A DNA stretch of 64,000 nucleotides from Macrostomum lignano (GCA_002269645.1 NIVC01001101.1:62001-126000), one strand, 5' to 3'; counted from the stretch's first letter, positions 1,913-47,884 are shown. A program made the numbers and translations. Notes: generated by a model from the letters alone, not told the origin.

Positions 1913-2982
1913 CAGTGATTGTCTACCAAGAGTCAGGGCGGGGGGGGGTTGCCTACCAAGAGACAGGGGTACCAAGTAAGAGACACTCGGTGCGACACTA
2001 AATGTTCCAAATATTGGCACCCTTGCGCCCCCTCCAATTAAAATACCTGCGTATGCCTCTGACTGCAGTTTTCTGCAACTAGTGTTTGAGAGATTCTTTC
2101 TTCCCCAGCTGTGGCTCAGCAAGTACAGCAAGTGACTGACTCGCGTAATGAGCTCCCGCCAAAATGCCAATGGGATCCAAAACCAACTCAGCAGTGCTGA
2201 GTCGTCTGACGGAAAATTAACCATTAGCATTTTTTTGTTTTTGAGTCAATTTTAGTATCTGTATATTTCTCATTTGTAAATAAATATGCAAATAAATAAG
2301 AGTTATAAATGGAGCTTTGAGCTAATAAGCTAGACATATCAGATTATTGCGAACATATTTTCACATTTCTACAGATACTACAGAGTTACATGTACTACTG
2401 AGATCTGCAGACAATGGCACTAACTGACAGGTTGCCTTATATCAAGTGGCTGTCAAAATTGTAACCTATATTTTTATGGTAAAAAGTCAATTGTCGGCAT
2501 TTTTAACACCACCAGTTTTGGCGGTGCTGGTTGAAGGGCGCTCCGAGGTAAATCAGCCTCAAAGAAGACAAGCAACGGAATACTCGCTCGATAACGTCGG
2601 TTTTGGTTGCCAGGTGCGAACCGAGACGCGTTCTGTGCCGTACTTAGTTTTGCTGGCGTAAAATTAATTATAAGACAGAGGACAGTAAGTAAATTGGCTA
2701 TTGTTTCTGAGCGAGCTGGTAAGCGCTTGATTCGAGTTTATCAAGCTGAACTGGAGACTAGCTGAGATAAGCTTAGATGAGATTGGTAATGCGCTACATT
2801 TAGCTGCTCCTCTAAAGGAGAAATCTTCAATCTGATGCTCCACAAGCTGGCATATGGTCAATCGAGCACTGAACGACAAAAATAACTTCCTGTATTCCTA
2901 ACGCATTTAACGTCCTTTAACCTACGGGTACTTTAGCAAAGACTACTCAAGTAGAAAGACGGGAATTGGATTGCTTAGAAAA

Positions 2983-3494
<512 letters not shown>

Positions 3495-3509
3495 TGAGAA
3501 TGAAAATTT

Positions 3510-6380: not shown

Positions 6381-8280
6381 CGTCTTCATCTTCATCTTCG
6401 TCTTCATCTTGATCTTCGTCTTCATCTTGATCTTGATCTTCGTCTTCATATTGATTTGGATCTTCGTCTTCATATTGATTTGGATCTTCGTCTTCATCTT
6501 GATCTTGATCTTCGTCTTCATATTGATTTGGATCTTCGTCTTCATATTGATTTGGATCTTCGTCTTCATCTTGATCTTGATCTTCGTCTTCATATTGATT
6601 TGGATCTTCGTCTTCATATTGATTTGGATCTTCGTCTTCATATTCATCATCGTATTCAAAGTCATCTCTGTTCACAAATTCGATTCGCCAGGTTGTAACA
6701 ATTACTCGACCATTCTCCACCTTTGCCGCTTTGTACTGAACACCTGCATCGGAGGACAGGATGTACTGCGGTGTTTCTGATGTCGGCCACAGTGTGAGTG
6801 AAGGTGCGCAGGGAGCCAGTTGAAATTCAGCTGGAACAGAGTTCTCCCCAGCCACGGCATAGGCATGGTCTTTTGTGTCACTGCACAAGCCCGGCGTCTG
6901 GCATGGTCCCATATAGAACGACCTTGAGTTGATCAGCTTCTTAGTAATGATGCAGATAGTGAAAACATTCCACCTATCAGACAAGAACAGCATCTGGTCT
7001 CTGACTGACATTTTCGAACCATCTCTCATGAGCTCACAACCACTGGGTATGGGAAAAGCCAGTTGAACCTTACCAGAGTCTTTCTCGACTCCCACAATGG
7101 CCAGATGTCGATCTGGCTTTTCAATTAGAGCAAACAGCTTGTCGCAGTTTCCAGCAATGCACCACAGCTCCGTAGCGCCTTCGTGCAACTCGGTGATGCA
7201 GATTCTTGACTTGAGAGCTCCGCTGAGGTCGGTCACTGTCACCGCTGTCTCCTGAGCGATGAACAGCAGCTGTCGCTCATTGTCGCAGTGGAGATCTCGG
7301 ATCGGCTGATCGGCCTCCCAGCTGCACGTCAGGCGTCCAACTTCTTTTGCATCATCGGAGAGCAGCAAAATTTTAAACGCCATGTCATTCTGGTTTTCCG
7401 GCAGTACCGAAACCCTTGATAATCTTTTATGCTGTTCTTGATCACTTTCAGGTTGTACAGCTACAAAGATACTCGGCTGTGGCAGACAGTTGCTGCAATC
7501 CCCAGCAGCCTTCTCAATCACACCTGACTCGTCAATGACAAAACCTGTGGTGTTGCTGCACACTGTCAGACAAAACGCCCTCTTCAGAATCTCTGGCCTC
7601 TTTGTACTCTGTTCTGCTTGAAGTCGAATTTCTTTTGTGCTTTTTTGTGCTTGAAGTAGAATTTCTTCATGAATCTTCCTAGAAACTGCAGCAGGATCAA
7701 ACTGCTCAACGAGTTTTCTAAGTAAAACCAAGTCAGCGCGCATTGCCGTCTCAAGCTCTCTGATTCTCGAGTTCAAATCCGGGTAAGCTGCGATTTCGAC
7801 TGTCTGACTTTCCTTATCCAATCTCACCAGATTCGAGTCCAGCTGCAATGTCTTCAGCCATCCCTCCATGCTCCTGTTGATGAGGAAGGCCTGCCTCGTG
7901 TTTTTGTCATCCTTGGCTCTCTTTAGCTCCTTCTCGAAGTCTTCCAGCTCTGAGACACTTGACAGATGGTCCATCAGTTGGTCATGCTGTTTGGTAACGA
8001 CAGCAACGAGCTCACTTTGACACCTGTCCAATGTCTCTCTCAGGTCGGTAAAGGTGTCATCGAGCAGCTGCAGGTCGGATGTGAGTCTCTGCTGCATCAG
8101 TCTCATGGGCTCCTGGTACTTCTTGAAGAGCTGCACTTTCTGGGCTACTCTGGCTTGAGCCTCGTCTACTTCGATGAAGTCTTGCTGCATGTGCAGGTCG
8201 CAGAGAGGCTGGCAGGTCACAGGCGACTCACCAACAGCGGGACTGCGGCAGAGGCGCACTGAACAGCTTTCTGTCTCCAT
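6262..8280 (-). CDS. B-box-like Zn motif / coiled-coil / predicted beta-propeller protein with acidic tail (copy G1); acidic tail interrupted by RTE
   Basis: Open from ATG 8280 (METESCSVRLC..CQPLCDLH, C-x4-C-x11-C-x3-C-x2-H), through a heptad-rich region and a beta-rich domain, to (EDEDPNQY/EDEDQDQD)n. Reads ~40 aa into the RTE and stops at 6262. The original end EDEGQYEYGDERHYAY* is displaced to 4500-4556. Confidence 0.75.
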   Translation of the reverse strand: METESCSVRLCRSPAVGESPVTCQPLCDLHMQQDFIEVDEAQARVAQKVQLFKKYQEPMRLMQQRLTSDLQLLDDTFTDLRETLDRCQSELVAVVTKQHDQLMDHLSSVSELEDFEKELKRAKDDKNTRQAFLINRSMEGWLKTLQLDSNLVRLDKESQTVEIAAYPDLNSRIRELETAMRADLVLLRKLVEQFDPAAVSRKIHEEILLQAQKSTKEIRLQAEQSTKRPEILKRAFCLTVCSNTTGFVIDESGVIEKAAGDCSNCLPQPSIFVAVQPESDQEQHKRLSRVSVLPENQNDMAFKILLLSDDAKEVGRLTCSWEADQPIRDLHCDNERQLLFIAQETAVTVTDLSGALKSRICITELHEGATELWCIAGNCDKLFALIEKPDRHLAIVGVEKDSGKVQLAFPIPSGCELMRDGSKMSVRDQMLFLSDRWNVFTICIITKKLINSRSFYMGPCQTPGLCSDTKDHAYAVAGENSVPAEFQLAPCAPSLTLWPTSETPQYILSSDAGVQYKAAKVENGRVIVTTWRIEFVNRDDFEYDDEYEDEDPNQYEDEDPNQYEDEDQDQDEDEDPNQYEDEDPNQYEDEDQDQDEDEDPNQYEDEDPNQYEDEDQDQDEDEDQDEDEDEDEDERTDIHQDARGHCRVPGNKKSIRRLQHRRHRNGNPPRPP
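6381..6655 (-). repeat. 24-bp coding minisatellite (GAAGACGAAGATCCAAATCAATAT / GAAGACGAAGATCAAGATCAAGAT)
   Basis: Direct; encodes EDEDPNQY/EDEDQDQD in the G1 frame. Confidence 0.95.
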
Positions 8281-11307: not shown

Positions 11308-14300
11308 CACAGAATATACGGAATGCCGATTCGATCATTTTTGTTTAAAAAATCGGTACAAGAATTAAAATCACACCAGCCCACACTTGTTGTAAAGCTT
11401 TGATAGGTAGGGCTTGAGGTTTTGCCATAGACTATTCTATGAATGAAAATGAAAAAGGAAAAGGAAAGGAAAGGTTTTCACTTGACTGAAAATTAAGTTC
11501 AGTCTGAGCTTTTCTGCGCAGCATGGTTGGAAAATCCAGACTCCAGTGCGCAGCCTATGGATGCCCAAACTATGCCTACAAGTGCCCTCCGGACACCCGA
11601 TTTCATCGATTTCCGTCAAGCCGCGAGAGGTGAGTAAATTTATTATATGAGGGGTCTTTCAAAAGTTCGTAGAGTAGCCATCTCCCCTTGAAAATTTTCA
11701 CAAGTATTATTCCATATATCTACAGCCTGCAGCTAAATTTTCAGCAAAATTGACTGAAATGACCGCGAGAAATCTGCGATCAAACTCTAAACCCCCCACT
11801 GCATTTACTGCATTCTCCAAGGAGCAGTCAAGAGCCATTTGACTACGAACTACAACCAAGTCTACGAACTTTTGAAATACCCTCGTACAACCGGCATCGC
11901 AATTCACACAATTAAAAACATGGCTAATCTTCAATTATGGCGCAAATTCAAATTTCAAATCCGAAGACTGGGCCAGACGCATTTTCCGAGCCGATCTTCT
12001 TGGAAAAATAAATGAAGGCAAATGGAAGTGTGCCGTTGTGTGCAGCCACCATTTTACGGATGAAATGTACTCATGTCCAAGACTCCGACATGATACATCC
12101 ACCAGGCTGTCTGACCGTGCGTACCCCAGCCTTCAATTTTACAAGGAAATTCCAGAGCCTCGGCAGCGGCCACCTCCGAAGTGTCGAGAAACGACTGACT
12201 CGGGATCGCACCCAGTCGTGCATAGGGTCGAGAGTGATGTCGGTGTTGCCAAAACTGAAAGCGAAAGTCTTCCGGCAAGAGGCCGCAAGCCGTCATCAGC
12301 TGCATACTTATCGGCGAGATTGAGGCAGCAGAACCGAAAATTCAGCAATTTGAACCGAAAACTGGCGCTTGTTCAAGCTAAATATAAAACGCTGCTTGCA
12401 GAAAATGCAAAGCTCCGCAATGATCGAGTGAAATGCCACTGCTCACAACTGAGTCAGATGACCCCAGTGGTGAAGGAATTCATCAAGGATCAGTTGCAGA
12501 ATTCGAAAAAGCGCCGTCCGACTTGGTCGCGTGCAACCCAACGCCTGGCAATTGGTCTGTTGCATTACAGTCCGAGATCACATCGATTTATGCGCGCATC
12601 GGTTTTCTCTTGCCATGTAGATCGACACTTCGACAGAAAATTGGATCTTGTGTGCGCAATTCTGGCATCTGTCCAATAATTGAGGGCAGTGTTGCAGCAG
12701 CTGCAGTTTCAATGACGGAAGCTGAGAAAATGTGCACCATCAGCCTTGATGGCATGGCAATCACACCGTCGTTAAGATTTGATCCAAATGCAGACCAAAT
12801 TATCGGATTTGAGGATTGTGGCCCTAGTGCGGGTGGTAGGACCTCGACGGTTGCAGACGAGCTGGTTGTCGTCTGGGTCAGAGGATTCTGCTCGAACTGG
12901 AAGCAGCCAGTCGGATTCTAACTCTTGCACCATGCACCAGGAGCTCTGAGATTCAAGCAAATTCTCACTGAAGCTGTCGCCGCTGTCACAAGAATGGGCC
13001 TGAAAGTGTACGCGATTGTCTGCGACCAAGAAGCGACACAGTGGAAGTGCATTCGTGATCTGGGCGCAAATGCCGACAGTCCTGAGATGAGCATCGAAAT
13101 CGACGGCAGTGTCGTTCGAATTTCAGCTGTAGTGGATGTTCCTCACTGTTTGAAGAACATGCGAAACGCGCTCATGAAATTATTCATTTCATTCATTTTG
13201 ATGACAATGGACAGCGGCAGATCGCTTGCTGGGCTGACATCTTAGCTGTCGCAGAAACTGAATTTAGTAAGCCTGATCAATTCCGACTGGTGCCCAAGTT
13301 AAAGGAAGTTCACGTCAATCTTACAATTGGCAAGAATATGAGCGTCAAGCTAGCTGCTCAGGTCTTGTCACGAACCAGGGCACAGGCTTTGCGTGTCTAC
13401 GTTGAGTACGGTGTAATTGTCAGTGACACTGCTCTGCATACCGCCAGGTTCTGCGAGCTTGTTGATGCTCTCTTCGATTCGTCAAATGGCAGACTGTCTC
13501 AAGATGGAATTACAATTGACAACAGGGACGCGAAGAATTCCGAAATCGATTATTGGTGTAACTGGTTGCAGGCTTTGGAGTTTCATAAGGATGGGGTCAA
13601 AGTGAACGGAATGAAGTTCAATACTGGCTGGCAATACAGTTTGAGGTCGATTCAGCAAATCGCAGAGCAAGCCCTTTAAGTCGACAGTACTGAGAAGGTG
13701 ATGGTGAGACAGCTAACACAGGATCACGTCGAAAACGGATTTTATTGCATCCGGCGTAGAGGCGGCTTCAATGACAGACCGGAGTGCCGAGAAGCCGTGG
13801 CGGCACTGAGGTCTTTATCTGTCAACCACTTGTTGGGCTGTCTATCGCAGACCAACAGCAACTGCGAGAACGATGGCAGCACCTTGCTGACCGAGTTTCA
13901 GGCCAAAGTAACAGCAAGTGCAAGTGCGCCCAGTCCTGGTCCGCAGGGCGATGGTCTGATTTCAGCAGACTCCACTGAGGAAGCTCAAGACCTGCCTGCT
14001 GGCACAGTCGGCAGCATTGAGAATGAGAAGTGCGCCTACATTGGAGGCTGGCTGCTTTTCAAGCTATTCAAATCTGAGGAAAAGTGCGAGGAGTGCCAGC
14101 AGTCGTTAAAAGGCGATGGCTCAGGAGAGATGCGCTTCCTGCAGCTCAAGAACGGACAGGGCGGGACTGGAAAACTGATCATTCCCAACAAGGCAGTCAT
14201 ATCTGCAGTCTGTCAGATGGAGCGCACCTTCACGACAACGGACAAAGAGCTGTTCGTTCTGAAGGACGTGAGCAAACGGCTTCAGGAAAAGTTCTTTCCC

Positions 14301-14731
14301 ATTGTTCTTGCTAATATTCAGACGCACAGCTCGGATCACGGCGAACGCTGTGCTAAGGCAATGGCCAAGTTGTTTGCCAGACTTCGCCTGCATCACTGGT
14401 GCAACAGTCAGAGGACGCTCGCTCAGCAGAGAAAGCGGGGGCGTACAACAGGAATAAAGAGAGCTGAATAGAGGAAGAAGCTGATGCGATTAAATGCTGT
14501 TTAACTGTAGTTTAACTGTGATGCGAATGAATTCTGTTTAACTTGAGTTCTTCATTGTTTGGTTTGTTTAGATGATAAACTACGACAAAATGATTAAATT
14601 TTACATTTGGTCCTCCAGGTTACTTATTATTCTTCGCTAATTTATACTACTGGCCATAGAATTCACAACAAGAGTAGTGCATACGAATTTTAATTCGGCT
14701 TCAGGGAAATCGCTCGATTTGGCATTCTGTG
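11308..14731 (+). mobile_element. P-element/THAP9-like DNA transposon, degenerate
   Basis: THAP domain MVGKSRLQCAAYGCPN..FHRFP (exon 11523-11629, GTGAGT donor) plus W..RIFRADL..VCSHHF..AYPS. Transposase motifs include SLDGMAI, WKQPVG, VCDQ, DVPHCLKNMRNAL, MSVKLAAQVLS and TQDHVENGF. It carries frameshifts and stops. Ends CACAGAAT..ATTCTGTG are defined by the empty paralogous site at 8711-8780. Confidence 0.9.
11648..11885. mobile_element. Mariner-type MITE (238 bp) nested in the THAP intron
   Basis: TIRs TGAGGGGTCTTTCAAAAGTTCGTAG / CTACGAACTTTTGAAATACCCTCG, flanked by TA on both sides. Confidence 0.85.
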
Positions 14732-16538: not shown

Positions 16539-16820
16539 CTAATATGGATATTGATATTCATCGTCATATTCATATTGACCTTCGTCTTCATCTTGATCTT
16601 CGTCTTCATATTGATCTTGATCTTCGTCTTCATATTGATCTTGATCTTCGTTTTCATATTGATCTTGATCTTCGTCTTCATATTGATCTTGATCTTCGTC
16701 TTCATATTGATCTTGATCTTCGTCTTCATATTGATCTTGATCTTCGTCTTCATATTGATCTTGATCTTCGTCTTCATATTGATCTTGATCTTCGTCTTCA
16801 TCTTGATCTTGATCTTCGTC
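16539..16820 (-). repeat. 3' half of the G3 acidic coding minisatellite (EDEDQDQY)n and natural stop (..EGQYEYDDEYQYPY*)
   Basis: 24-bp unit GAAGACGAAGATCAAGATCAATAT, the same unit as 20925-21160 on the other side of the RTE. Confidence 0.9.
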
Positions 16821-19800
16821 TTCTTCTTCTTCTTCTCCGTTTATCGCCTTGCGGCGTGGAGTGAACAGCGTCAGGCTTCACCGCAAGTGCGTTTGTGTCG
16901 CGCCATGTTTGTCGCCGATAACGTTCTTCCGCACTTGTCGCATTCTGCTGTCTTCCTTCGGTATTTTCTTGCTCTTCTCTTGTTCTCCTCCATCTCCGGT
17001 GGATTGTGGTGTTGTTCTTTACATGTCTTTCTGTGCCTCGCTAGGTTCGATTTTACGATTGTGCTTCCACATTGCTGACATTTTACTCTTGACGCATCTA
17101 TTTCCGTCTCGCCTTGGCACACCTTCTCATGGTTTGCCAGGGTCGCTTCCTGTCGGAACTCCTTGTCGCATTTGTGGCATCTGAATTTCACCGGCTCTTT
17201 AAACACGCGATGCATCCTCTTTTGGTGGATGGTTAGTCCGCCCTTGCTTTTACACACTTTGCCGCAGAGTTCGTATTCGCATTTGAAGCCATCTCCAACC
17301 TCTCTCGGGTTCGTTTTTACGTGGTACCGTTCTTGACTTCGTTCGATCAGGCTGTTGTTACTGTCCGTCTTGGCCTTTTTTCCTTGCACTCTCTCCCACT
17401 CTTGTAGGTGTACAGTCCGCTGGTGTACTACGTTCCGCCAGTGTTTCCTGTCTAGAACGTGGCGTTCGATGTCTTGCGGTTCCATACCGGCTTCCCGGAT
17501 GAGGCGCTTCCAGTAGGATATGGTGTTGTTTTTCCGTTTTTTGCGCTTAGGGATCCTTTCCAGGCCTCTGTACCACCCTAATACGGCTTGCTTTATTTGT
17601 CTGTCGTCTTCCATCCGTAGGACGTGGCCAATCCTTTTTAGGTGACTTTTCTCAATCTTTGTTCTTAATGACACAACACCTAGTTCGTTGCGGATATCTT
17701 GCATATTTACTCCTAGGCTTTCCATTTCGCGCAGCGGTTCCATTCTCTTGTTGGACCAAATGTTGCGGTATGTTTTGTCGATGAACTGTTGCATTTTCTT
17801 GATTTCGCCGAACAGGAACGGGCGGGTGTTCGCATGGAACAGGAGTACACTTTCCACGCACGCCTCGACCACTTTAGCTTGTGTGGTCTTTTTCAGGCGG
17901 CATCGATGGAACCTTTTCCTGATCGCATTCCACGCTTTGGCGGCTCTCTGGATTCTTTGCTGTGTGTCGTATCTCCTATCCATCCACGACCCTAGGATGC
18001 GAGTTTTACCTCCGACGGATGTTCCTAGGGCCATCTCCTCCTGTTTCTCGTCATTTGTCAGTTCTTCGAACTTCTTCATATTCTCTTTGGTCGTTGTTAG
18101 GCTTCTCGTCAGTTCTCTGCCATTGCCTAGGATGGTGGTGTCGTCTGCAAAGAGCGATGAGGTCCACTTGACCGTTCACATCTCCGAGTTGTACTGGTTG
18201 ATTCTCTGAGGTGGCAAGGAGTGTCCAGGTAAGTACGTCCATTCCACCCCGCAGCTTAATCCTCTGCTGGCCGCTTCTGTCTCCCGAGTTTCTTCCGCTT
18301 TCCTGATGCTCGCCTGGTGGTAGATGTTAAATAATATCGGGGAAGTTGGGCATCCCTCGCGTAAGCCTCGCTCGGGTAGCCATGTTTCGCTTGATTTCTC
18401 CTTGCCTTGCACTTTATACGCGGTATGTTCATGCAGGTCTTTCAGTTTTTCGATCGTCTCTTGCGGCATCTTGTACGCTTGGAGGATTCCCCACAGGATC
18501 GGCTTGCACACTCTCGGATATGCCTTACGGAGGTCTAGGAGGATTGCCGTTTCTGTGTCTTCGATGTTGCAGTCTCCTGATGCTCTTTTTGTTTCCAGGT
18601 ACTCGGCAATGTCCTCGTGCATCCTGGTGAATATCTGTGCGTTGTCCGCCGTCGATCTTCCACTTCGGAAGCCGTTCTGGTTGTCATCTAGCGCTCCTAT
18701 CACTTCTGCCCAATTCCGGATTCTGGTAGCCAGAATGCGGGCTAGTATTCTGCTGAGCATAGGTAATAGGCAGATTCCTCTGTAGTTATTCATGTCTGCT
18801 CGGTCTCCCTTCTTGAATAATGGAATAATGAGTCCAATTTTCTCGTTGTCATTCCATTTGTGCGCTCGCTCTTCAAACAGAAAGCGGATCCTTGCATACA
18901 GTTCTTTACGTACTGCGTCTGGGGCGATTCTAATGTATCTGATACGAAGTTCGTCCTCCCCGGGACTTCGGTCTTTCATTTCTTTAATGGCTGCTTCTAT
19001 TTCAAGGTCCGTTGGGACTGTCGTCAGTTGTGTTCTTGTCTTTTCCGTATCTTCCTGTTCCTTCATGGTTTTGATTGATCTGATCAGTTCGGCTGTTTCG
19101 GTTTCCGGGTTTTCCAATCTAGTCCCTTGGATTCTTTCCAAATGGTTCTTGAAGTCATCTTCGTCAAAGTTGGTGTCTGTTCCGCTGTTGTTCCACTTTC
19201 CTCGCTTGTCCAACATCCTTAATTTCTCATAGACCACTGCGATCTGGCCTCTATCCGCGGCATTTCTGCATTCCTCAGCGATTGCGTCCCACCAGTTTTC
19301 CTCCCATTCCGCGAGCTTCTTTTTTATCTTTTTTCGGATAGTTGTAGTCGCTAGGCGGGCTAGGGTCGTCGCCGCCGAGGTGGGGTCTTCTCTGACGCAT
19401 GCGTTGCGATGGGCCAGCGTTTCTGCCAGCTCTCTTTGTTGTGCCTCGTGTTCGTCCAGGTGGGGGGCCATCCACGGGTTCGTTACTCGTGTCACCGTGC
19501 CGCATACGTGCCTTGCACTGTCGATGATTGAGTTTTGAACGTCTGTCCATTTCATGTCTGTGAGGTTCCTGTCCTGCTTCTCTCTTAGTTCTTCGAATCT
19601 TGTTAGTATTTCTTTTTTTAACTCAGATGCCTTGTTCTCGTCGTGGAGTTTCCTCCAGTCGATGTTCTTCCGCCTGCGTCTCGTCTGGTCCTTGACGTAC
19701 TTGTTCCGTGTCCAGCCCCGAATTATGACGGTTTTGGGCAGGTGGTCCGACAAGTTGCACTTGTTGTGGTTCTTTATCGTTTTGACCAGGCGGTGTCTGT

Positions 19801-20608
19801 CCTGCACGCGAGTTATGAAGCCGTCTATCTCATACCACGTGCCGGTGCTTGGATTTCTCCAGGTTCCCCGGTTTTTTGACTTGTGGAACGAGTTGATCCA
19901 GGCTAGATCATTTGTCACTAACCAGTTTGCGAGGTCTTCGCCCTGCTGGTTGGTCAGTGCTAAGCCAAACTTTCCTCGATGTTGCGCGTCTGTGCTTTCA
20001 AATTTGCCAATCTGTGCGTTCATGTCACCGCCAATGATGATTGGTTTGTTCTTTCTTTCATTATGAATGTAACGTTCCAGGGTGTTTCTGAGCTCTGCTA
20101 GTTCCGTTTCGTAGTCCGGAGTGCCTCTAACTGGGCAGTACACGCTGATCAATGTCGCGTCGTATATTTCTATCATGATCGCTCTGTTCGTAATATTCTT
20201 TTTTGATCCGCTGTCCTTCCACGTCTGGTACAATTCCTGGTTTAGGATGATGCCTGTTTTCTTGCCGTGAATCAGGAATGAATTTTGTTTCGGTTGGTGG
20301 TAACTTCTTATTCCGTCTGACGGTGCCGATAACTCCGAGATGAGGGCTACCTCCCAATTCTCACTCATAATCTTTTTTGCGATCTCTCCAAAACGCGTGC
20401 CGAACACGTTTGCCCGCTGGACATTCCATGTTGTTATTCTCAGCTCGTTGTTTAATGTTTCTCTGCGTTTGTTAATCTTCTTCGTTCTTCTTGTTCCACG
20501 GCGTCGGGTTCTTCTGATTAGTCTGCTTTTCTTCTCTTTTTGGGTTTTCGGTCGTTTTGTGCTTTTTCTTGGGTTTTCGGATTCTTTCTTTGGTCTTTCC
20601 TTCCTGTT

Positions 20609-20650
20609 TGGTCCTGGGTTCTTCTCTACTGTCGTCAGCTGTGCTTTCAC
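20609..20650 (-). other. 2A/StopGo-like motif (VKAQLTTVEKNPG/P) in the RTE ORF upstream of APE
   Basis: 7 of 8 positions of D(V/I)ExNPGP match, with T in place of D. Position (N-terminal to APE) matches known LINE 2A-like sequences. Confidence 0.6.
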
Positions 20651-20846
20651 TTCCGCCGACCTTTGTTTCCGGCTTGGTCTTGTGCGGCTCTGCTGTTCCT
20701 CTAGCTCTCTACCTTTGTGCTGTCCACTGGTTTTTGCCTGGTTAATCTCGGTACCCAGGTCGGCTACTTCTGGGTACCACGAGTGAAAAGGGCCGGTGTC
20801 GTCGTACTGGCTTCCGCCAGTGGCTTCGATCCATGGTCCCTTCCGT

Positions 20847-20924
20847 TTGCTCCCTTCTTTGCCAAGACTTTTTCGGGTCTTGTCCACTGGCCACCTCGTG
20901 AAGGTGGGGGAACAATCGGCCAGC
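20847..20924 (-). ncRNA. HDV-like (nested double-pseudoknot) self-cleaving ribozyme at the RTE 5' end
   Basis: Hand-folded: P1 GCUGGCC/GGCCAGU (G1.U wobble); P2 UUGUUCCC/GGGAGCAA; P3 ACC/GGU; L3 UUCACGA; P1.1 UC/GG; A.G pair then P4 CAAGAC/GUCUUG; J4/2 CAAA with the candidate catalytic C at 20861. Confidence 0.85.
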
Positions 20925-22762
20925 TTGATCTTCGTCTTCATATTGATCTTGATCTTCGTCTTCATATTGATCTTGATCTTCGTCTTCATATTGATCTTGA
21001 TCTTCGTCTTCATCTTGATCTTGATCTTCGTCTTCATATTGATCTTGATCTTCGTCTTCATATTGATCTTGATCTTCGTCTTCATCTTGATCTTGATCTT
21101 CGTCTTCATATTGATCTTGATCTTCGTCTTCATCTTGATCTTGATCTTCGTCTTCATATTCATCATTGTATTCAAAGTCATCTCTGTTCACAAATTGGAT
21201 TTGCCAGGTTGTCACAGTGACTCGTCTATTCTCCACCCTTGCCACTTTGTACTGAACACCTGCATCTGAGGACAGGATGTACTGCGGAGTCTCGGATGTC
21301 GGCCACAGTGTCAGTGAAGTTGCGCAGGGAGCCAGTTGAAATTCTGCTGCAGAAGAGTTCTCCCCAGCCACGGCATAGGCCTGGTCTTCTGTGTCACTGC
21401 ACAAGCCCTGCGTCTGGCATGGTCCCATACAGAACGACCTTGAGTTGATCAGCTTCTTAGTAATGATGCAGATAGTGAAAACATTCCACCTATCCGATAA
21501 GAACAGCATCTGATCTTTAACTGACATTTTGCTATCTTCTTTGCAAGCTCACAACTGGGTATGGAAAAAGCCAGTTGAACCTTACCAGAGTCTTTCTCGA
21601 CTCCCACAATGGCCAGATTTCTGTCTGGCTCTTTAATTAAAGCAAACAGCTTGTCGCAGTTTCCAGCAATGCAACACAGATCTGTTGCGCCTTCGTGCAA
21701 CTCGGTGATGCAGATTCTTGACTTGAGAGCTCCGCTGAGGTCGGCCACTGTCACCGATGTCTCCTGAGCGATAAACAGCAGCTGTCGCTCATTGTCGCAG
21801 TGGAGATCTCGGATCGGCTGATCGGCCTCCCAGCTGCACGTCAGGCGTCCAACTTCTTTTGCATCATCGGAGAGCAGCAAAATTTTAAACGCCATGTCAT
21901 TCGGGCTTGAACCGCTTTCATCATCTATTGTCGCTGAGAGGAGTTGCTGTCGTTGATCAGCTTCAGGAAGGACAGCTACAAAGATACTGGGCTGTGGCAG
22001 ACAGTCGCTGCTATCCTTATTAGCCTTCTCAATCACACCTGACTGGTCAATGACAAAACCTGTGGTGTTGCTGCACACTGTTAGGCATACTGCAGTTGTT
22101 AGCACCTCTGCCTTGCTTATTCTCTCTTCTGCTCGAAGAGCAATTTCTTCATCAAAACGCCTAGAATCAGCAGCAGCATCAAACTGCTCAGCGAGTTTTT
22201 TGAGTAGAACCAACTCAGCTCTCAGTCCGGTCTCAAGCTCTCTTATTCTCTAGTTCAAATCCGGGTAAGCTGCGATTTCGACTGTCTGACTTTCCTCATC
22301 CAATCTCACCAGATTTGAGTCCAGCTGCAATGTCTTCAGCGATCTCTCCATGCTTCTGTTGATGAGGAAGGCCTGCCTCGTGTTTTTGTCATCCTTGGCT
22401 CTCTTTAGCTCTTTTTCAAAGTCATTCATGTCTGAGACAATTGACAGATGGTCCATGAGTTGGTCATGCTGCTTGGTAACGACAGCAACGAGCTCACTTT
22501 GACACCTGTCCAATGTCTGTCTCAGGTCGGTAAAGGTTTCGTCGAGCAGATGTAGGTCGGATGTGAGTCTCTACTGCATCAGTCTCATAGGCTCCTGGTA
22601 CTTCTTGAAGAGCTGCACTTTGTGGGCTACTCTGGCTTGAGCCTCGTCTACTTCGATGAAGTCTTGCTGCGTGTGCAAGTCGCAGAGAGGCTGGCAGGTT
22701 ACAGGCGACTCGCCAACAGCGGGACTGCGGCAGAGGCGCATTGAACAACGAGCGGATTGCAT
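20925..22762 (-). pseudogene. Paralog G3 of the B-box-like/coiled-coil/propeller family
   Basis: MQSARCSMRLC.. with stops at 22571 and 22250 and a frameshift at ~21530. The acidic repeat is split by RTE copy 2. Confidence 0.85.
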
Positions 22763-23440
22763 GATTTTCTGCTGGTAGGCGCTTTGAGTAGGAACTGCGC
22801 TAGTGCGTTGCAGCTTTTCTCTTCGTAACTTTTATGCTCTGGTTGTAGAGAGGAGTATTCATAGTCTAGTGTGTGCTAGTATAGTATACATGTATTGTGA
22901 TTGGGAAAATACTGTACAGTACTAAATGGGAAGCAGGCATTTTAATATTAATACATTTACGTAGCTTTCCCAACCGTATGGAGAGAAATTACTTAGACAA
23001 CGAGACTTAAGAGACGAAAAGGATCTAAACTGCACAATTGTACGAGTGGGAAAAACTGTCTTACTTGAATAGCTTTCTTTATCGATTTATTCTGCTACTG
23101 AACCGTGCATATTTGTCTGCTCCATTCGACTTATTCCTCCCTACGAGGCAGTGCTTTTCATTTAATCGATCTTAAATAGATTGGAAAAATAGGTTAGAAA
23201 TTGACACTAATTTATTGTGAGAATTAAAAAGTAAATGAGATACGCACGTCAGGGTTATTTTCATTGGCATTAATTGGCTTTGCTTAAAAAGATGTGATAA
23301 GCCGATTCGTTGCTACTACTCATAGTAAATCCGGCGCTCCATACGAAACCATTAATGCCAGGTTATTCCAAAGACCGATATCCGTAGTTGACATCAGCAA
23401 GTTGTGACAGCGCGGCAACCGCAAACATCAGACGAAGGAC

Positions 23441-25008
23441 TTGACCACCGGCTCAACTGGTCCTTCCACGTGAAAGCAAAAGCCAAGCGTGCCTCAGCCA
23501 TCCTGGCCCAGCTCCGACGAGCACTTGGCACTTCTTGGGGTCTATCCCCAAAGCGGCTTTGGTGGATCTATACTTCCGTAGTTAGACCTGCCATTACGTA
23601 CGCCTCTGTTGTCTGGGTTAGCGCTACCCAGGTCAAAAGCCATGCAGACCTGCTCAACACGATCCAAGGCAGAGCGTGTAGGCTCATCTGCAACGCCACC
23701 AAGTCCACGCCCTTTGCTGGCATGGGGGCCTTCCTTAATCTACCGCCTCTTAACCTCTTCGCCAGGGGTGAGGCGGCTAGAACGACGCGGCGTCTAATTG
23801 ATGCCGGCGTCAAATTCATTTACATGAGAGCACCTGCTAAGCGGAACCTTGTCCCGCATAGCGACCTGTGCCTCAACTTTCTCAACGAGTGTCAGGCCAA
23901 TCGCGTCTTCACCGATTGCATTGCCTCAACGCTCAACCTGAGACAGCGCTACTCCGTAGCTATCGACTCGCGCGATAACATCAATGACCAATGGAACTTT
24001 GGTGAGCTTCATAGCTACACCGACGGTTCTAAGCAGTCAGCCAACACCGGCTTTGGTGTTGGAATCTTTCTGAACGGGAGGGTCATCGCTACCCACGCTC
24101 AATACACTGGGTTCAACTCCAGTGTTTTCCAAAATGAAGTTCTGGCCATCAGCTCCTGCACTGCAGAGCTTCTCGCTACTGGCGTTACTGGTAAGAACAT
24201 CATTTTCCATTCGGACAGCCAAGCTGCCTTGCACGCCATCAGTGGCTGCAGCACCAACTCTGCTACAGTCCTCGACTGTATCAAACTCATCAACGTGTTG
24301 GGTTCCGCCAACAAAATTACCCTTAAGTGGGTTCCGGGGCATGTGGGGATCCGAGGAAATGAGTTGGCTGATACCCTTGCAAAAGTTGGTGCCTCTCTCG
24401 GCCCCGAACCTCTTGTCCCGATTCCTGGCTGTGTCATCGACTCGCGCATCAAAGCGTGGATCAGGACTCAGCACCGCTCGACTTGGGCGAACCGCACGAA
24501 CTGCAGGCAATCCAGAGGCGCTGTCCCTCAGCCCTCTCACCAGCTCCGGAAGCTCCTCTTGCGCCTCTCGCGCAGAGACATCCGGGCTGCCACCATGACC
24601 CTCTCTGGTCACGGCTGCTTCTCCAGGCACCAGTACCTGCAGGGCAACGCCAGCAACGCCACCTGTAGTTTCTGCAACTCAGGTGACGAAACCGCTGAGC
24701 ATTTCGTCAGCATCTGTCCCGCCTTCACGCGGGCCAGACTCACTTACCTCGGGCCACACACATCTATTACTGAAGCGTGCAAACCCGAAAACTTTAATCA
24801 GCTCATGCGCTACCTTCGGGCCACCCGCAGGGCTGAACTCTCCTTTCCAGAGAGCACTATAGCTGCTGGCGACACTGGGGGACCTCCCTGGGCGGCGACA
24901 ACCCTCCGTCCATAGCGACGCGTCGGCCGTTCAGGGACTAGCGGAATGGGCGCCCGCGCCTTCCCACTGTGTCCCCTCTGGGACAGCCCTGCAGCTAAGT
25001 CAAGTCAA
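23441..25008 (+). mobile_element. 5'-truncated LOA/R1-group LINE (RT thumb, RNase H, CCHC), 11-bp TSD
   Basis: WGLSPKRLWWIYTSVVRPAITYASVVW, TDGSK, SDSQAAL, WVPGHVGIRGNELADTLAK, CSFC..ETAEHF..CP. (AAGTC)n tail. TSD AGACGAAGGAC at 23430-23440 and 25009-25019. Confidence 0.9.
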
Positions 25009-27859: not shown

Positions 27860-28618
27860 ATGAGCAATAATCTCTTGACGATGAGCATAAAACTCTTGAC
27901 GACGTTTTTGGCTCTGGGCCTCACGCTCGGCAGTGACAACCAGCAGCTGTATGTTCTCATCAACGGATATCTCTGCATCAACGGCAAGTTTGTTGAGACC
28001 TACTCAAGCGAACTCAACAAAGTCGGGTGCGCCGCTCTGTGCACCCAAAACCAGCGCTGTCAGGCGTTCAGCCTGGCTGACGGTCCGTGCCAGCTGTTCG
28101 TGTTCGACAAGTGCAGCAAGTCGGTGAGGAGCTGCGGCTGCTCCAGGAGAGGCCGGGTGTTCGTCAAGCAGCGGCCGGGACTCGAGGCGGGCGCGCTGTG
28201 TCCGTCTGGCTACGGCATGGACCTGTGCGGAGTGAAGTACAGGCTGTACTCTGGCATCGGGACGTGGTGGCCGAGCAGGCAGAAGTGCGAGTCAGAGAGC
28301 GGTCTGGTCATCATGGCCGACGTGACCAGCGAGCAGGAGATGAGCCATGTGGACTCGATCTACTCGAACTTCAGCTTTGGACAATCGATCTGGCTCGGAG
28401 GCCTCCAGCCAGCAGGCAGTGCGAAGCCGGATGGCGGCTGGTACTGGGTCGGCTGCAATGACACCGTGGACGCTGCTCTGTGGGCCAAGAATGAGCCCAA
28501 CAATGGGGGTAATGAAAATGTTATATTCAGATTCCATGAATTTGCTGGTCTGACCGACTGTGCTGAGACATGCACAGTGTCTACCGTTCTGTGCGAGTGC
28601 GTCTCGCCCTTCATCTGA
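27860..28618 (+). CDS. Secreted PAN/apple + C-type lectin domain protein (EPN)
   Basis: Signal peptide; CAALC..RCQAFS..CQL (PAN-like); CPSGY..SRQKCE..WLGG..WYW..W..NEPNN..EN..D..CEC. Single exon. Confidence 0.85.
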   Translation: MSNNLLTMSIKLLTTFLALGLTLGSDNQQLYVLINGYLCINGKFVETYSSELNKVGCAALCTQNQRCQAFSLADGPCQLFVFDKCSKSVRSCGCSRRGRVFVKQRPGLEAGALCPSGYGMDLCGVKYRLYSGIGTWWPSRQKCESESGLVIMADVTSEQEMSHVDSIYSNFSFGQSIWLGGLQPAGSAKPDGGWYWVGCNDTVDAALWAKNEPNNGGNENVIFRFHEFAGLTDCAETCTVSTVLCECVSPFI

Positions 28619-32293: not shown

Positions 32294-33770
32294 TTGAACC
32301 TGAATGCTTGGATCGAGGAGTTAGAGTTGGTTGATTTGCCGCCTGTTAGGAAGAAGTTTATCCTGGATGGTGTTGCTGAGGGCTTTCGCATCACGAATGT
32401 CCAGCAGGAAGCCCGGAAAACAGTCGAGGTCAGCAATTACGGGTCTGTTACTGCCTACTTTGAAGCTGTCGAGACGCAGATTTTGAGGGAGCTTCATCTG
32501 GACCGCTACCGCCCATGCATCAACGGGTGGCGGCCGCGGACTGTCAGTGCTCTGGGAGCCTTGCCCAAGAATGACGGTCGGGTGCGTTTAATTCACGACT
32601 GCAGTCGACCCGATGGTCTATCCGTTAACTCCCGGTGGGACAGAGACGAGAAGCTGCGCTTCTCAAGTGCAGAAAGCTTTGCTAGAAAACTGTGGAAGGG
32701 CTGCTACATGACCAAAGTTGACCTGAATGAAGCATACCGCGCATGTGGCGTGCACCCCGACGACTTTGTAAACACCGGCCTCAAATTCCAGTTTCACCAC
32801 CATTCTAGACCGACGTATCTGTACGACACTCGTTTGCCGTTTGGTGCAGCCGCCTCGGTCACGTGTTTTCACCGACTTATTAATGCAGTTCATCTAATGA
32901 TGGTACGCCGAGTCGAGTCGTTCTACCTGGACGACTTCGCCTTCTGCGGGACCCAGGAAGACTGCCAGCGTTTCTTTGACCAGCTGATCAACCTGCTGAC
33001 GCGACTAGGCTTCACCATCAATCAAGCGAAGTGCCAGCCGCCATCGCAGCGAATTTCCTTTCTCGGCATTGAGTTCGACACGGTCGGAGGGATCAAGAAG
33101 CTGCCGGACGAGAAGGCAAAGAACCTGGTTGCGTTGATCGGTGTGGAGTCGGCCAAGGTGAGGATAAGCCAGCGGGCACTGCAACGAGTTATCAGAAAGC
33201 TAGGGTGGGCAGCGCGGGTCATCAACTGTGGAAAAACCTTTTTGCGTGAGTTGATTGAGCGGTGTAACACTTTGAGGCGGGGTCAAAGGACGCTAGTCGA
33301 GGCCGGACTGCGAAGTCAGTTGAACTGGTGGAAGGTAGCACTACAGTATTGTAATTGGATGCGGCTGTGGCCGAGCTATGCGGGCGCCTTCGCGATCGAG
33401 TCTGATGCGTGTGGTAGAGGTGGTGCGGCGCTGTTGCGTGGTTCAGGCGGTTGGTGAGACTAGTGCTACTTGGACTGGAAGAAGGATGCGGATGCTGCAT
33501 TCGCGGAGCTGCCAATTAATTACAGAGGCAGCGGCTCCCCTGTTGGCGCTGATGCGTTGGAAGAATGAGCTAAGGGGCTAGAAGGTGAGCATCTACTGCG
33601 ACAACCAGGTGGCTTGCTACATAATAAACAAAGGTGTTTCAAAGTGTCCAGAACTGCAGCGTCTGCTGCAGACAGTTGCGCTGATGAGTTTGCGCTTCGG
33701 CATTAGCGTTCGTGCTTTTTATGTTCGGAGTGAATTTTAGATATTTTCGGATGCCGCCTCACGCCTTCAT
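32294..33770 (+). pseudogene. Ngaro RT-RNase H ORF with internal stops
   Basis: ORF 32294-33457 plus downstream RNase H motifs. Confidence 0.85.
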
Positions 33771-40255: not shown

Positions 40256-40724
40256 GCTGTTTGCCACGAGCTCGACGGATCTAACTGACAACATTGCTGT
40301 TTTTTATTGTTGTTTGTTGTCAGCCTACTATAGGATTAAGAAACACTCTGTCAGATACGTAAAATATCTGTCTCGCATATTTAGGTCTACTGACTTTTTG
40401 CTCGTAAGCAACCTTTTTAAAAGTACTTTTCGGTTTACCTGTTCTTTTTTAAATCAAATTTAATTCAAGGACCCATGCTTTTTAAAGAGAAGTTTCCAAA
40501 AAACCTGGCTACGAGTATTGATACTTTATTGATTCATTGTTCGCCTTTTGTTCCACCTATCAAAAATCGCGTAGCTATCCTTGTAATAATACCTAGCTGT
40601 CCTCTTCTCGAAAGGCCCTAAATCTTTCAATAACATAATATGCAAATAACTTTTTAAAAACTGGCAGTAATCGGTGTTTGAGCAATGCAATTTTGCGTCC
40701 TGCTAATTAGTTATTACTGATAAT

Positions 40725-41006
40725 TAGAACTGGCTATGATAATTATTACTGGCTATGACAATTAGGACTGGATATGATAATTATGACTGGCTATGTTAAT
40801 TATGATTGGCCATGATAATTATGACTGGCTATGATAATTATGATTGGCTATGATAATTATGATTGGCTATGATAATTATGATTGGCTATGATAATTATGA
40901 CTGGCTATGATAATTATGATTGGCTATGATAATTATGATTGGCTATGATAATTATGACTGGCTATGATAATTATGATTGGCTATGATAATCATGACTGGC
41001 TTTGAT
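40725..41006. repeat. 19-bp minisatellite (TATGATAATTATGATTGGC)n
   Basis: Direct; degenerate paralog at 52685-52915. Confidence 0.95.
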
Positions 41007-41039
41007 AAGCAGTCAACACAAACAACAACAGTCAAAAGT

Positions 41040-42755: not shown

Positions 42756-43517
42756 ATGAGCAATAATCTCTTGACGATGAGCATAAAACTCTTGACGACG
42801 TTTTTGGCTCTGGGCCTCACGCTCGGCAGTGACAACCAGCAGCTGTATGTTCTCATCAACGGATATCTCTGCATCAACGGCGAGTTTGTTGAGACCTACT
42901 CAAGCGTACTCAACGAAGTCGGGTGCGCCGCTCAGTGCACTCAAAACCAGCGCTGTCAGGCGTTCAGCCTGGCTGACGGTCCGTGCCAGCTGTTCGTGTT
43001 CGACAAGTGCAGCAAGTCGGTGAGGAGCTGCGGCTGCTCCAGGAGAGGCCGGGTGTTCGTCAAGCAGCGGCCGGGACTCGAGGCGGGCGCGCTGTGTCCG
43101 TCTGGCTACGGCATGGACCTGTGCGGAGTGAAGTACAGGCTGTACTCTGGCATCGGGACGTGGTTGCAGAGCAGGCAGAAGTGCGAGTCAGAGAGCGGTC
43201 TGGTCATCATGGCCGACGTGACCAGCGAGAAGGAGATGAGCCATGTGGACTCGATCTACTCGAACTACAGCTCTGGACAATCGATCTGGCTCGGAGGCCT
43301 CCAGCCAGCAGGCAGTGCGGAGCCGGATGGCGGCTGGTACTGGGTCGGCTGCAATGACACCGTGGACGCTGCTTTGTGGGCCGACGGTGAGCCCAACAAC
43401 TATGGAGGTGTCGAAAATATTTTATTCAGATATCTTGGTTTAGCTGGTCTGAGCGACTGTACCGGGACATGCATCATGTCTGCCGTTCTGTGCGAGTGCG
43501 TCTCTCCCTTCGCCTGA
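42756..43517 (+). CDS. Secreted PAN/apple + C-type lectin (EPN)
   Basis: Intact 253-aa ORF; TATAAA at ~42683. Confidence 0.85.
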   Translation: MSNNLLTMSIKLLTTFLALGLTLGSDNQQLYVLINGYLCINGEFVETYSSVLNEVGCAAQCTQNQRCQAFSLADGPCQLFVFDKCSKSVRSCGCSRRGRVFVKQRPGLEAGALCPSGYGMDLCGVKYRLYSGIGTWLQSRQKCESESGLVIMADVTSEKEMSHVDSIYSNYSSGQSIWLGGLQPAGSAEPDGGWYWVGCNDTVDAALWADGEPNNYGGVENILFRYLGLAGLSDCTGTCIMSAVLCECVSPFA

Positions 43518-46052: not shown

Positions 46053-46793
46053 ATGAGCAGTAATCTCTTGACGATGTACTTGGCTCTGGGCCTCACGCTC
46101 GGCAGTGACAACCAGCAGCTGTATGTTCTCATCAACGGATATCTCTGCATCAACGGCGAGTTTGTTGAGACCTACTCAAGCGTACTCAACAAAGTCGGCT
46201 GCGCCGCTCTGTGCGCCCAAAACCTGCGCTGTCAGGCGTTCAGCCTGGCTGACGGTCCGTGCCAGCTGTTCGTGTTCGACAAGTGCAGCAAGTCGGTGAG
46301 GAGCTGCGGCTGCTCTAGGAGAGGCCGGGTGTTCGTCAAGCAGCGGCCGGGACTCGAGGCGGGCGCGCTGTGTCCGTCTGGCTACGGCATGCAGCTGTGC
46401 GGAGTGAAGTACAGGCTGTACTCTGGCATCGGGAAGTGGCGGTTGGGCAGGCAGAAGTGCGAGTCAGAGAGCGGTCTGGTCATCATGGCCGACGTGACCA
46501 GCACCCAGGAGATGAGCCATGTGGACTCGATCTACTCGAACTACAGCTCTGAACAATCGATCTGGCTCGGAGGCCTCCAGCCAGCAGGCAGTGCGGAGCC
46601 GGATGGCGGCTGGTACTGGGTCGGCTGTAATGACACCGTGGACGCTGCTCTGTGGGACAAAAATGAGCCCAACAACGATAGAGGTGTCGAAAATGTTATA
46701 TTCAGATTCCATGGTGTAGCTGGTCTGTCCGATTGTGCTGAGACATGCACTGTGTCTACCGTTCTGTGCGAGTGCGTCTCGCCCTTCATCTGA
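46053..46793 (+). CDS. Secreted PAN/apple + C-type lectin (EPN)
   Basis: Intact ORF from ATG 46053; TATAAA at ~45978. Confidence 0.85.
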   Translation: MSSNLLTMYLALGLTLGSDNQQLYVLINGYLCINGEFVETYSSVLNKVGCAALCAQNLRCQAFSLADGPCQLFVFDKCSKSVRSCGCSRRGRVFVKQRPGLEAGALCPSGYGMQLCGVKYRLYSGIGKWRLGRQKCESESGLVIMADVTSTQEMSHVDSIYSNYSSEQSIWLGGLQPAGSAEPDGGWYWVGCNDTVDAALWDKNEPNNDRGVENVIFRFHGVAGLSDCAETCTVSTVLCECVSPFI

Positions 46794-47464: not shown

Positions 47465-47708
47465 CAGGGGCGACCACCAAGAAAGAGGGGGCGACTACCA
47501 AGAGAGAGGGGGCGACCACCAAGAGAGAGGGGGGCCGACTACCAAGAAAGAGGGGGCGACTACCAAGAGAGAGGGGGGGCGACTACCAAGAGAGAGGGGG
47601 CGACCACCAAGAGAGAGGGGGGGGCGACTACCAAGAAAGGGGGGGCCGACTACCAAGAAAGAGGGGGCGACTACCAAGAGAGAGGGGGGGCGACTACCAA
47701 GAGAGAGG
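47465..47708. repeat. G-rich ~21-bp minisatellite, paralog of 1662-1912
   Basis: Direct. Confidence 0.95.
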
Positions 47709-47884
47709 GTCTGCAAGTTTGTAGGCAAAACTCTCAAGCTCTCACACTCGCCGCGCTCTCATATACATATCATATATTAGATTACTATCGATAGCTAACA
47801 GGTGTACATCGAATGTACACACTATTACGCACACGCATAGAGTAGCGACACAACATTCTCCTTATCTTCCGATGAGCGGAATCG

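Follow-up and report, generated by a model that had tools for sequence, protein, structure and literature searches.

The stretch analysed here, 64,000 nucleotides (nt) of one strand of the Macrostomum lignano genome (GCA_002269645.1, NIVC01001101.1:62001-126000), is referred to at that full length as the window. It carries a 4.1-kb retrotransposon that interrupts an acidic tandem repeat in a host open reading frame (ORF), together with a second, shorter copy of the same element in a paralogous repeat. The longer copy is a long interspersed nuclear element (LINE) in which a predicted ribozyme of the hepatitis delta virus (HDV) type is followed, in one frame, by a leader, a 2A-like motif, an apurinic/apyrimidinic endonuclease (APE), a reverse transcriptase (RT) and an array of zinc (Zn) fingers. 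The features are listed below, with the basis of each call in brackets where there is one.

16821..20924, minus strand: full-length LINE, copy 1, 4104 nt (bounded by the first ribozyme base and the (GAA)5 tail, with the duplication on either side)
20925..20939, minus strand: 5' copy of the target-site duplication (TSD), (GAA)GACGAAGATCAA (12-16 nt recurring at 16820-16809)
20847..20924, minus strand, element nt 1-78: HDV-like ribozyme (Rfam RF02682 and our own covariance model R1)
20633..20923, minus strand: leader reading frame, ~97-101 codons before the 2A motif (translation)
20747..20783, minus strand: leader hairpin with the loop AAGUAGCCGAC (core UAGCC), then AUUAACC (loop motif search and covariation)
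20609..20632, minus strand: 2A/StopGo-like motif TVEKNPG/P (translation); the sequence of the 2A region is AEVKAQLTTVEKNPGP
20444..20608, minus strand: Lys/Arg-rich segment between 2A and APE (translation)
19736..20431, minus strand: APE domain, amino acids (aa) 165-396 (Pfam PF14529, 6e-11; PF03372, 8e-4)
17444..18856, minus strand: RT with C-terminal extension (RVT_1, 2.8e-18, aa 705-964; family-profile envelope aa 690-1159)
18176..18178, minus strand: in-frame TGA of copy 1, CGA (Arg) in copy 2 (translation)
16883..17287, minus strand: four C-terminal Zn fingers, one C2H2 and three C2HC (Pfam zf-C2H2, 7.5e-9, aa 1213-1267)
16836..16870, minus strand: 3' untranslated region (3'UTR), 35 nt, with a small hairpin CGCC-GCAA-GGCG at 16856-16845 (sequence)
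16821..16835, minus strand: (GAA)5 tail (sequence)
16806..16820, minus strand: 3' copy of the TSD (sequence)
20925..21164, minus strand: upstream half of the host repeat, 24-nt unit GAAGACGAAGATCAAGATCAATAT, Asp/Glu/Gln-rich in the host frame (Tandem Repeats Finder, TRF; ORF 20742-21527)
16542..16820, minus strand: downstream half of the 24-nt host repeat (TRF)
4557..~6380, minus strand: copy 2, 5'-truncated, starting in the RT at element nt ~2280 and ending in (GAA)5, with a 1-nt insertion
6381..6648, minus strand: paralogous host repeat upstream of copy 2 (TRF; sequence)

How well do these modules hold together as one element? A single frame runs from 20923 to a stop codon at 16871-16873, with the TGA at 18176-18178 as its sole interruption, and the modules and boundaries that a sequence-only reading of this DNA had proposed for a 4.1-kb element were all found, on the minus strand, subject to two amendments. 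The leader comes to ~101 codons rather than ~104, and the GCAA stem-loop, although present as a hairpin in the sequence, lacks statistical support, the 3' end folding no better than its shuffles (z=-1.6). The TSD measures 12-16 nt in the window, its exact extent being ambiguous as the target itself is repetitive. The RT carries the motifs LLDLRKAYPRV, RGLREGCPTSP, LFADDTT and IGHVLRM, and only ~50 aa separate its C-terminal region from the first finger; by inspection, the fingers read as one CX4CX12HX4H followed by three CX2CX11-12HX3C. No Pfam match to RNase H was obtained in the element ORF, and a local RNase H hidden Markov model was negative across the family described below. The Lys/Arg-rich tract is a possible nuclear localization signal or nucleic-acid binding segment. 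The resulting layout combines features of two kinds: those of RTE type (a single ORF with APE and RT but without RNase H, a very short 3'UTR and a simple-repeat tail), and those of Ingi type (one ORF, a 5' HDV-like ribozyme, an N-terminal 2A, APE, RT and C-terminal fingers of the C2H2 type).

Because copies 1 and 2 are 99.8% identical over ~1.82 kb (three substitutions and one inserted base), whereas their host flanks are 88.4% (upstream) and 95.7% (downstream) identical, this comparison marks them as two independent recent insertions that long postdate the duplication of the host sequence. Only copy 1 has the stop (CGA>TGA), each copy bears one disabling lesion, and copy 2 sits in the equivalent acidic repeat of the paralogous ORF. 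The proposal that the element lands in coding GAA-rich repeats holds in its first part, both copies lying in acidic GA-rich repeats; that these repeats are coding is plausible but weakly supported, because the codon-position divergence between the host paralogs is only mildly skewed (0.132/0.100/0.154) and paralog 1 has indels of lengths not divisible by 3. No Pfam domain is present in the host ORF (703 aa in paralog 2).

A word-indexed search with the element returned ten proteins with 36-45% identity over 88-95% of the ORF, and an exhaustive search gave 24,366 matches at E<=1e-3, in which a small family is followed by a steep drop. A look-up of the window ORF found no record of it. Overall, ~20 relatives at 36-45% identity keep the ribozyme, the 2A, the finger array and simple-repeat tails; the check on full-length relatives that the sequence-only reading had recommended has thus been run, and both the ribozyme and the 2A are kept across subfamilies. 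Their sources are marine metagenomes, Tara Oceans among them, with contigs of 4.1-5.9 kb, and a single ENA assembly with contigs on the Mb scale. All of them have four fingers, with the C and H residues invariant in 11 sequences and an identity of 31-44% across the array within the family, and a similar basic tract lies between 2A and APE in all. Their 3'UTRs measure 14-45 nt, several with a small GC hairpin, and end in tails of (GAA)7-8 in the closest family and of (CGA)6, (CCAGA)3, (ACAAG)n, (TGGA)5, (AGGA)4, (TCATG)3, (GATAC)4 or (GATTCAA)n in the others. The only names attached to relatives in cluster look-ups and in the profile search are 'ribonuclease HI', Polarella glacialis and an Apostichopus 'endonuclease-reverse transcriptase', and the relatives in the PDB are L1 and R2 only.

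A complete HDV fold, that is, a nested double pseudoknot with P1, P1.1, P2, P3 and P4, can be drawn from the window sequence. It comprises P1 GCUGGCC/GGCCAGU with a G1.U wobble, P2 GUUCCC/GGGAGC, P3 ACC/GGU, P1.1 GG, P4 CAAGAC/GUCUUG, and J4/2 GCAAAGAA with the putative catalytic C. The Rfam model HDV-F-prausnitzii (RF02682) matches 20849-20924 with its first base exactly at G20924, at 31.6 bits (E=0.005), which is below the gathering score of 44. To what extent is this fold kept by selection on pairing? In an alignment of six subfamily representatives, made by hand and N-padded to hold the MAFFT register (MAFFT alone misaligned them), 19 of the 24 pairs in P1-P4 show a compensatory change and all 122 of 122 cells are paired; a structure-fitted alignment inflates the latter percentage, and it is the compensatory changes that constitute real evidence. 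When the 3' partners were slid by 1-3 columns as a control, 2-9 compensatory pairs were obtained, against 19 in the real register. Invariant across the aligned ribozymes are the C-A-A-A of J4/2, the GG of P1.1 and one C of L3. Covariance model R1, built from this six-subfamily alignment, scores the window ribozyme at 48 bits (E=2e-8), its only match in the 64 kb, and also matches the 5' ends of loci outside its training (L029, L033, L002, L024, L040 and L041).

Self-cleavage is predicted to occur 5' of P1 nt 1, and the 5' ends of insertions among the relatives agree with this position. Five insertions of the P0007 subfamily, set in unrelated upstream DNA, all end at the first P1 base (ACUUGC...), three of the closest subfamily (L001, L041 and L029) end at G1 of GCUCGG, and in total 8-10 independent insertions have their 5' end at P1 nt 1. 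The expected pile-up of 5' ends at the first base of the ribozyme is therefore seen in the relatives, the window itself having only one full-length copy to offer. Clean TSDs enclose the ribozyme start and a (GAA)7-8 tail in L001 (13 bp) and L041 (12 bp). The first base of P1, usually G, is C in L031/L032 (CCUUGAG), L039 (CCCUGUC) and L012 (CCUUGCC) and A in the P0007 subfamily; in L031 and L032 the ribozyme boundary is ambiguous by 1-2 nt. Two L001-type internal deletions (L017 1-150 and L030 1-140) fuse the initial ~30 nt of the ribozyme to sequence lying immediately upstream of the 2A, and these derivatives may be non-autonomous forms.

The flanks of such insertions also bear on target choice. 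Counted over the 60 nt that precede each of 23 insertion sites, drawn from about nine subfamilies, GAT+GAA+GAC exceed ATC+TTC+GTC in 22 of the 23 cases (sign test p=6e-6), and in the first 20 of these 5' flanks GATGA occurs 35 times and TCATC 3 times. The 3' flanks are biased in the same direction but more weakly (13 versus 2, with 5 ties; p=0.007), two automatically extracted ones being possibly mis-anchored. The bias is strand-specific relative to the element and is seen in most subfamilies with tails other than GA triplets. A bias of insertion toward repeats, which had been suggested from the window alone, is borne out by these triplets, and the acidic repeats that the two copies entered exemplify a wider (GAD)n preference, GAD meaning here GAT, GAA or GAC.

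What could read such a target? The best candidate is the finger array: a tandem of four fingers could span ~12 bp, which would fit a triplet-repeat target, and the bias is orientation-specific. An alternative that we rate somewhat below even odds is that the fingers serve as a sequence-independent nucleic-acid chaperone in place of ORF1p, as C2-L1Tc does, and that APE or chromatin picks the target. The two C-terminal CX2CX12HX3-5H fingers of L1Tc indeed act as a chaperone whose binding to nucleic acids does not depend on their sequence (PMC5814959), and the present element has no ORF1 and has basic stretches flanking its fingers. Neither the reading span of the array nor the orientation of the bias is decisive against such a role, and targeting and chaperoning could coexist.

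It is considerably less probable that the association with repeats arises from the tail, either by annealing of the (GAA)n RNA tail to a TTC-rich nick or by post-insertion expansion of the tail into microsatellites, the process proposed for lepidopteran RTEs. The window and L001 subfamilies do have (GAA)n tails, the nick in the window leaves a ...GTCTTC-3' primer complementary to the tail, and RTE tails are known to seed microsatellites. Tail annealing or expansion alone is nevertheless insufficient, because the bias is strand-specific, is strongest in the 5' flanks, beyond what a tail can create, and is present with tails of (TCATG)n, (ACAAG)n, (GATTCAA)n, (GATAC)n and (AGGA)n. Moreover, the flanking repeat is mainly GAT and not the tail unit, and the TSD of L041 (GCCCATGGTTCG) is not complementary to GAA, although a GAT-rich tract lies 4 nt upstream of it. 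In this last locus (L041 9960-9992 and 14044-14056), the L001-type element is nested 16 nt into an apparent L012-type 5' end (again GCCCATGGTTCG), beside a (GAT)n tract.

Where, then, does the family belong? After the family itself, the best full-length matches in the exhaustive search are single-ORF proteins of 1350-1890 aa (25-32% identity, 140-240 bits); among those scanned with Pfam, P0081, P0093 and P0094 have RNase H, and several bear C-terminal C2HC finger arrays. An OTU-like cysteine protease domain follows the RNase H of P0093 (aa 1542-1638). RT profile scores range from 190 to 377 in the RNase H-bearing group and from 113 to 172 in a compact, RNase H-less group of ~1000 aa, and a neighbour-joining tree of RT domains, computed without bootstrap and without labelled Ingi, Vingi, RTE or RTEX references, places the family beside the former group and the compact one further off. 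The motifs D[LI]xKAYPxV (KAYPRV), RG[LF]REGCPSSP and FADDT are shared by the family with the RNase H-bearing group only, the compact group having instead the generic KAFDSV, G[VL][RK]QGC and YADD. In a weak C-terminal comparison, a peptide of BovB, a true RTE (verified at up to 97% identity to database fragments of 64-109 aa), matches members of the compact group only. GHVxRM/DRxxWR was dropped as an RTE marker, as the RNase H-bearing group has this C-terminal motif too, and the RNase H-bearing outgroup L042 begins only 12 nt before its ORF, too short to show a ribozyme or a 2A.

These comparisons run counter to the assignment made in the sequence-only reading, namely an RTE lineage that converged on the 5' module of L1Tc/Ingi, with the ribozyme and 2A head and the Zn-finger tail gained independently. 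In its favour are the RTE hallmarks (Tay et al. 2010), namely a single ORF that encodes APE and RT but lacks RNase H, a 3'UTR of very short length and a tail of simple repeats; the 5' ribozymes known in RTEs; the presence of compact RTE-like elements within the top 150 of the 24,366 matches; and the finger array, for which two compact elements that lack RNase H (P0149 and P0145, E~1e-9) are the best outside match. The RT scores, the tree and the shared motifs, however, side with the RNase H-bearing group, the BovB peptide matches the compact group only, and 2A has not been reported in RTE. Since the ribozyme, 2A, APE, RT and C-terminal Zn fingers in one ORF constitute the L1Tc plan as a whole, common descent is also the simpler reading. 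Membership in RTE sensu stricto is thus unlikely and the independent gain of both ends improbable, and the best-supported reading, more likely than convergence, is that the family comes from an APE-RT-RNase H-finger lineage and has lost the RNase H. The family may already be catalogued in Repbase or Dfam under some name.

If the ribozyme occupies the very 5' end, where could translation begin? The window leader is open from nt 2, with an in-frame CUG at nt 2-4 and no Met/AUG, and the frame that carries the 2A is already open before nt 1 in 12 of 14 elements. Six relatives from four distinct families (L001, L041, L029, L002, L003 and L036) have an in-frame AUG at nt 9-11, inside J1/2 of the ribozyme (L001 2626-2628, L002 93-95, L003 30-32, L036 327-329), where the window copy has UGU at the same codon position. 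In several relatives the long ORF thus opens with codons of ribozyme sequence, and the gene call of P0007 begins at this in-ribozyme AUG. In the window, the element frame continues open for 262 nt upstream into the host repeat (20925-21181, minus strand; the MKTKIKI... frame) with 13 in-frame ATGs, so that an uncleaved host-element transcript could be translated directly into the element ORF; the host's own Asp/Glu frame ends ~60 codons into the element.

In nine elements the leader holds a second RNA feature, a hairpin with the loop U[AU]GCC[AG]A situated 149-170 nt from the 5' end. Pairing in the 7-bp stem reaches 92%, with a compensatory change in 7/7 pairs, and the peptide encoded there is not conserved. 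Sites outside the window include L001 ~2760-2800, L002 ~230-270 and L036 ~450-490, a UAAAAAC-like sequence comes 3' of the hairpin, and in several subfamilies UUUUUU(A/U)GGCAAC stands 5' of it. The hairpin could be a protein-binding site or a translation aid. The leader as a whole looks like an RNA first and a peptide second, and the 2A would therefore have a clear job, that of discarding the leader peptide.

The 2A of the window, TVEKNPGP, has T where the canonical D(V/I)ExNPG/P has D, and occupies an N-terminal position as in Odon et al. The relatives have at the same place DVEKNPGP (closest family, canonical), DIETNPGP, DIEPNPGP, TIESNPGP or, in many of them, T[IV]HPNPGP, and most have H for the E that Odon et al. 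found important, its non-conservative replacement having abolished activity. NPGP with the prefix [TD][IV][EH]x is kept in most relatives, whereas the leader peptide around it is not conserved. In one subfamily (L010-L013) the 2A has decayed to DVNENPES and an AUG lies three codons upstream, which looks like a natural swap of the 2A solution for ordinary initiation. Its four members (JGI Ga0187761, Ga0187750, Ga0187729 and Ga0187726) have a heptamer tail, (GATTCAA)n, and are inserted within long (GAT/GGT)n microsatellites; at their 5' end (CCUUGCC...GGCAAGG) a ribozyme can be drawn by eye but is not matched by model R1. That this family has inherited the 2A-like motif, and possibly the ribozyme too, as relics without function, as the non-canonical residues and the subfamily starting at the adjacent AUG might suggest, is improbable given a motif kept at 36-45% identity amid a leader peptide that is not conserved, ribozyme helices that covary around an invariant core, and insertion 5' ends that coincide with the predicted cleavage site.

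Taken together, the evidence points to a recently active non-long terminal repeat (LINE) retrotransposon whose design follows the L1Tc/Ingi plan but omits RNase H, a reading to which we assign a probability of roughly 0.68. A number of points weigh against it, beginning with those already met: the match of the finger array to compact elements, the T and H residues in the 2A, the subfamily with the decayed 2A, and a tree that lacks bootstrap and labelled clades. In addition, the Rfam score of the ribozyme is subthreshold, and the Rfam scan of the window gave no family at the gathering level; the percentage of paired cells owes something to how the alignment was fitted; and the 5' and 3' flanks of the short metagenome contigs may stem from different copies, no TSD being visible there. 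Finally, an AUG is lacking from the leader of the window copy, the host ORF is devoid of known domains and shows a weak coding signature, and the functions of the ribozyme, the 2A and the enzymes are predictions.

A life cycle consistent with the L1Tc/Ingi-type reading could run as follows. The element would be transcribed within a longer host or read-through transcript, and translation would start at or near the 5' end set by the ribozyme, in several relatives presumably at the AUG of nt 9-11 and in the window copy either at a non-AUG codon or at an AUG of the host repeat on uncut RNA. Skipping at the 2A would part the APE-RT-finger protein from the leader peptide, in which RNA structure determines the sequence. 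This protein would nick the bottom strand beside GAT/GAA/GAC-rich DNA and prime reverse transcription at the target from the simple-repeat tail, leaving duplications of 12-16 bp and frequent 5' truncation. A strand-specific (GAD)n preference could account for the presence of both copies in acidic coding-type repeats, with the finger array as the best candidate reader of target DNA and a chaperone role as in L1Tc as the alternative.

What would be the significance of such a design outside trypanosomatids? The ribozyme and 2A head has so far been treated as a speciality of trypanosomatid L1Tc/ingi, and here it is conserved across a diverse marine-eukaryote family, which suggests an old and general answer to the needs of a promoterless LINE without ORF1 for a defined 5' end and a clean N-terminus. 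A far-reaching version of this idea, which we regard as doubtful, would see in the family a widespread and undescribed LINE lineage of marine eukaryotes. Its four-finger C-terminal array would direct orientation-specific integration beside (GAT/GAA/GAC)n, acidic coding repeats included; ribozyme, in-ribozyme ORF start, leader hairpin and 2A would together allow frame-independent expression from any host transcript; and the L1Tc-type head would be ancestral to a large clade and no trypanosomatid peculiarity. Be that as it may, the family offers natural variants (ribozymes starting with A1 or C1, the 2A TIHPNPGP and a covarying leader hairpin), and an APE-type LINE with a target class possibly read by its finger array is relevant to the question of how retrotransposons choose their targets. 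For annotation, elements of this kind interrupt acidic ORFs of low complexity and can be taken wrongly for exons of the host.

The remainder of the window is rich in transposons. Three other mobile-element ORFs lie on the plus strand (23404-24915, 32294-33457 and 13698-14471), among which RNase H, RVT_1 and a TNP-like RNase H C-terminal domain are found once each. Two pairs of plus-strand ORFs without Pfam domains, 27860-28618 with 42756-43517 (252/253 aa) and 46047-46793 with 56055-56801 (248/248 aa), are probably copies of other repeats; the former pair opens with a common 21-nt tandem repeat. Tandem arrays include (AGAT)129 at 2982-3495, a 22-nt unit CACCAAGAGAGAGGGGGGCGAC at 1662-1912 and 47467-47709, and a 19-nt unit repeated 15 times at 40718-41008.

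How does the element compare with systems already known? Vingi (Kojima et al. 2011) resembles it in having a single long APE and RT ORF without RNase H and in being related to Ingi. The Vingi ORF is, however, 993 aa long, as opposed to ~1350 aa here, no 2A was detected in Vingi by Odon et al., and neither fingers nor a ribozyme nor targeting are described for Vingi in the texts consulted.

The RTE clade (BovB, RTE-1 and lepidopteran RTEs) shares with the element a compact single ORF with APE and RT, a promoterless, co-transcribed lifestyle, presumed for the element, and a very short 3'UTR ending in simple repeats (Tay et al. 2010). Some of its families have 5' self-cleaving ribozymes, such as the twister of the RTE Perere-3 and the HDV-like ribozymes of Anopheles RTEs, and on this last point the sequence-only reading was correct. 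RTEs differ in that the RT motifs and profile scores of the element are not with the RTE-like set and in that neither 2A nor Zn-finger arrays have been reported for them. As that reading had largely stated, 2A-like peptides are reported for Rex1, Crack, L2, L2A, CR1 and Ingi and not for RTE or Vingi (Odon et al. 2013), and a metazoan Ingi, Ingi-1_AC of Aplysia, has a highly active 2A (Odon et al. 2013).

The predicted way of life also has a counterpart in R2 (and R1/R4), which uses an HDV-like ribozyme to free the element from a host co-transcript, has Zn fingers that aid target binding, and inserts into repeated targets. R2 has a restriction-like endonuclease, N-terminal fingers and one exact rDNA site, whereas the present element has an APE endonuclease, C-terminal fingers and a loose class of repeats as its target. 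Also comparable are the microsatellite-specific LINEs of the Tx1, R1 and R4 lineages reported by Kojima and Fujiwara (2004), among them Koshi in (TTC)n, Kibi, Dong, Mino and Waldo. They share orientation-specific insertion in simple repeats, including those of the GAA/TTC type, but are not described with ribozyme and 2A heads; in the searchable literature, an HDV-like ribozyme, a 2A and Zn fingers were found combined only in papers on L1Tc.

Apart from RNase H, the architecture is that of L1Tc/ingi, whose 5' design the sequence-only reading had rightly cited. L1Tc has the Pr77 ribozyme, a 2A, AP, RT and RH domains and two C2H2 motifs (CX2CX12HX3-5H) in one ORF (PMC5814959). The two have in common the single ORF, an HDV-like ribozyme in the first ~77 nt and an in-frame N-terminal 2A (PMC5814959, PMC3185411), followed by APE, RT and C-terminal CX2CX12HX3-5[H/C] fingers, the whole being flanked by TSDs. 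Relative to the L1Tc plan, the present family differs in the absence of RNase H, four fingers rather than two, a simple-repeat tail in place of poly(A), a target bias toward GAD repeats and a leader of ~100 codons with a conserved hairpin.

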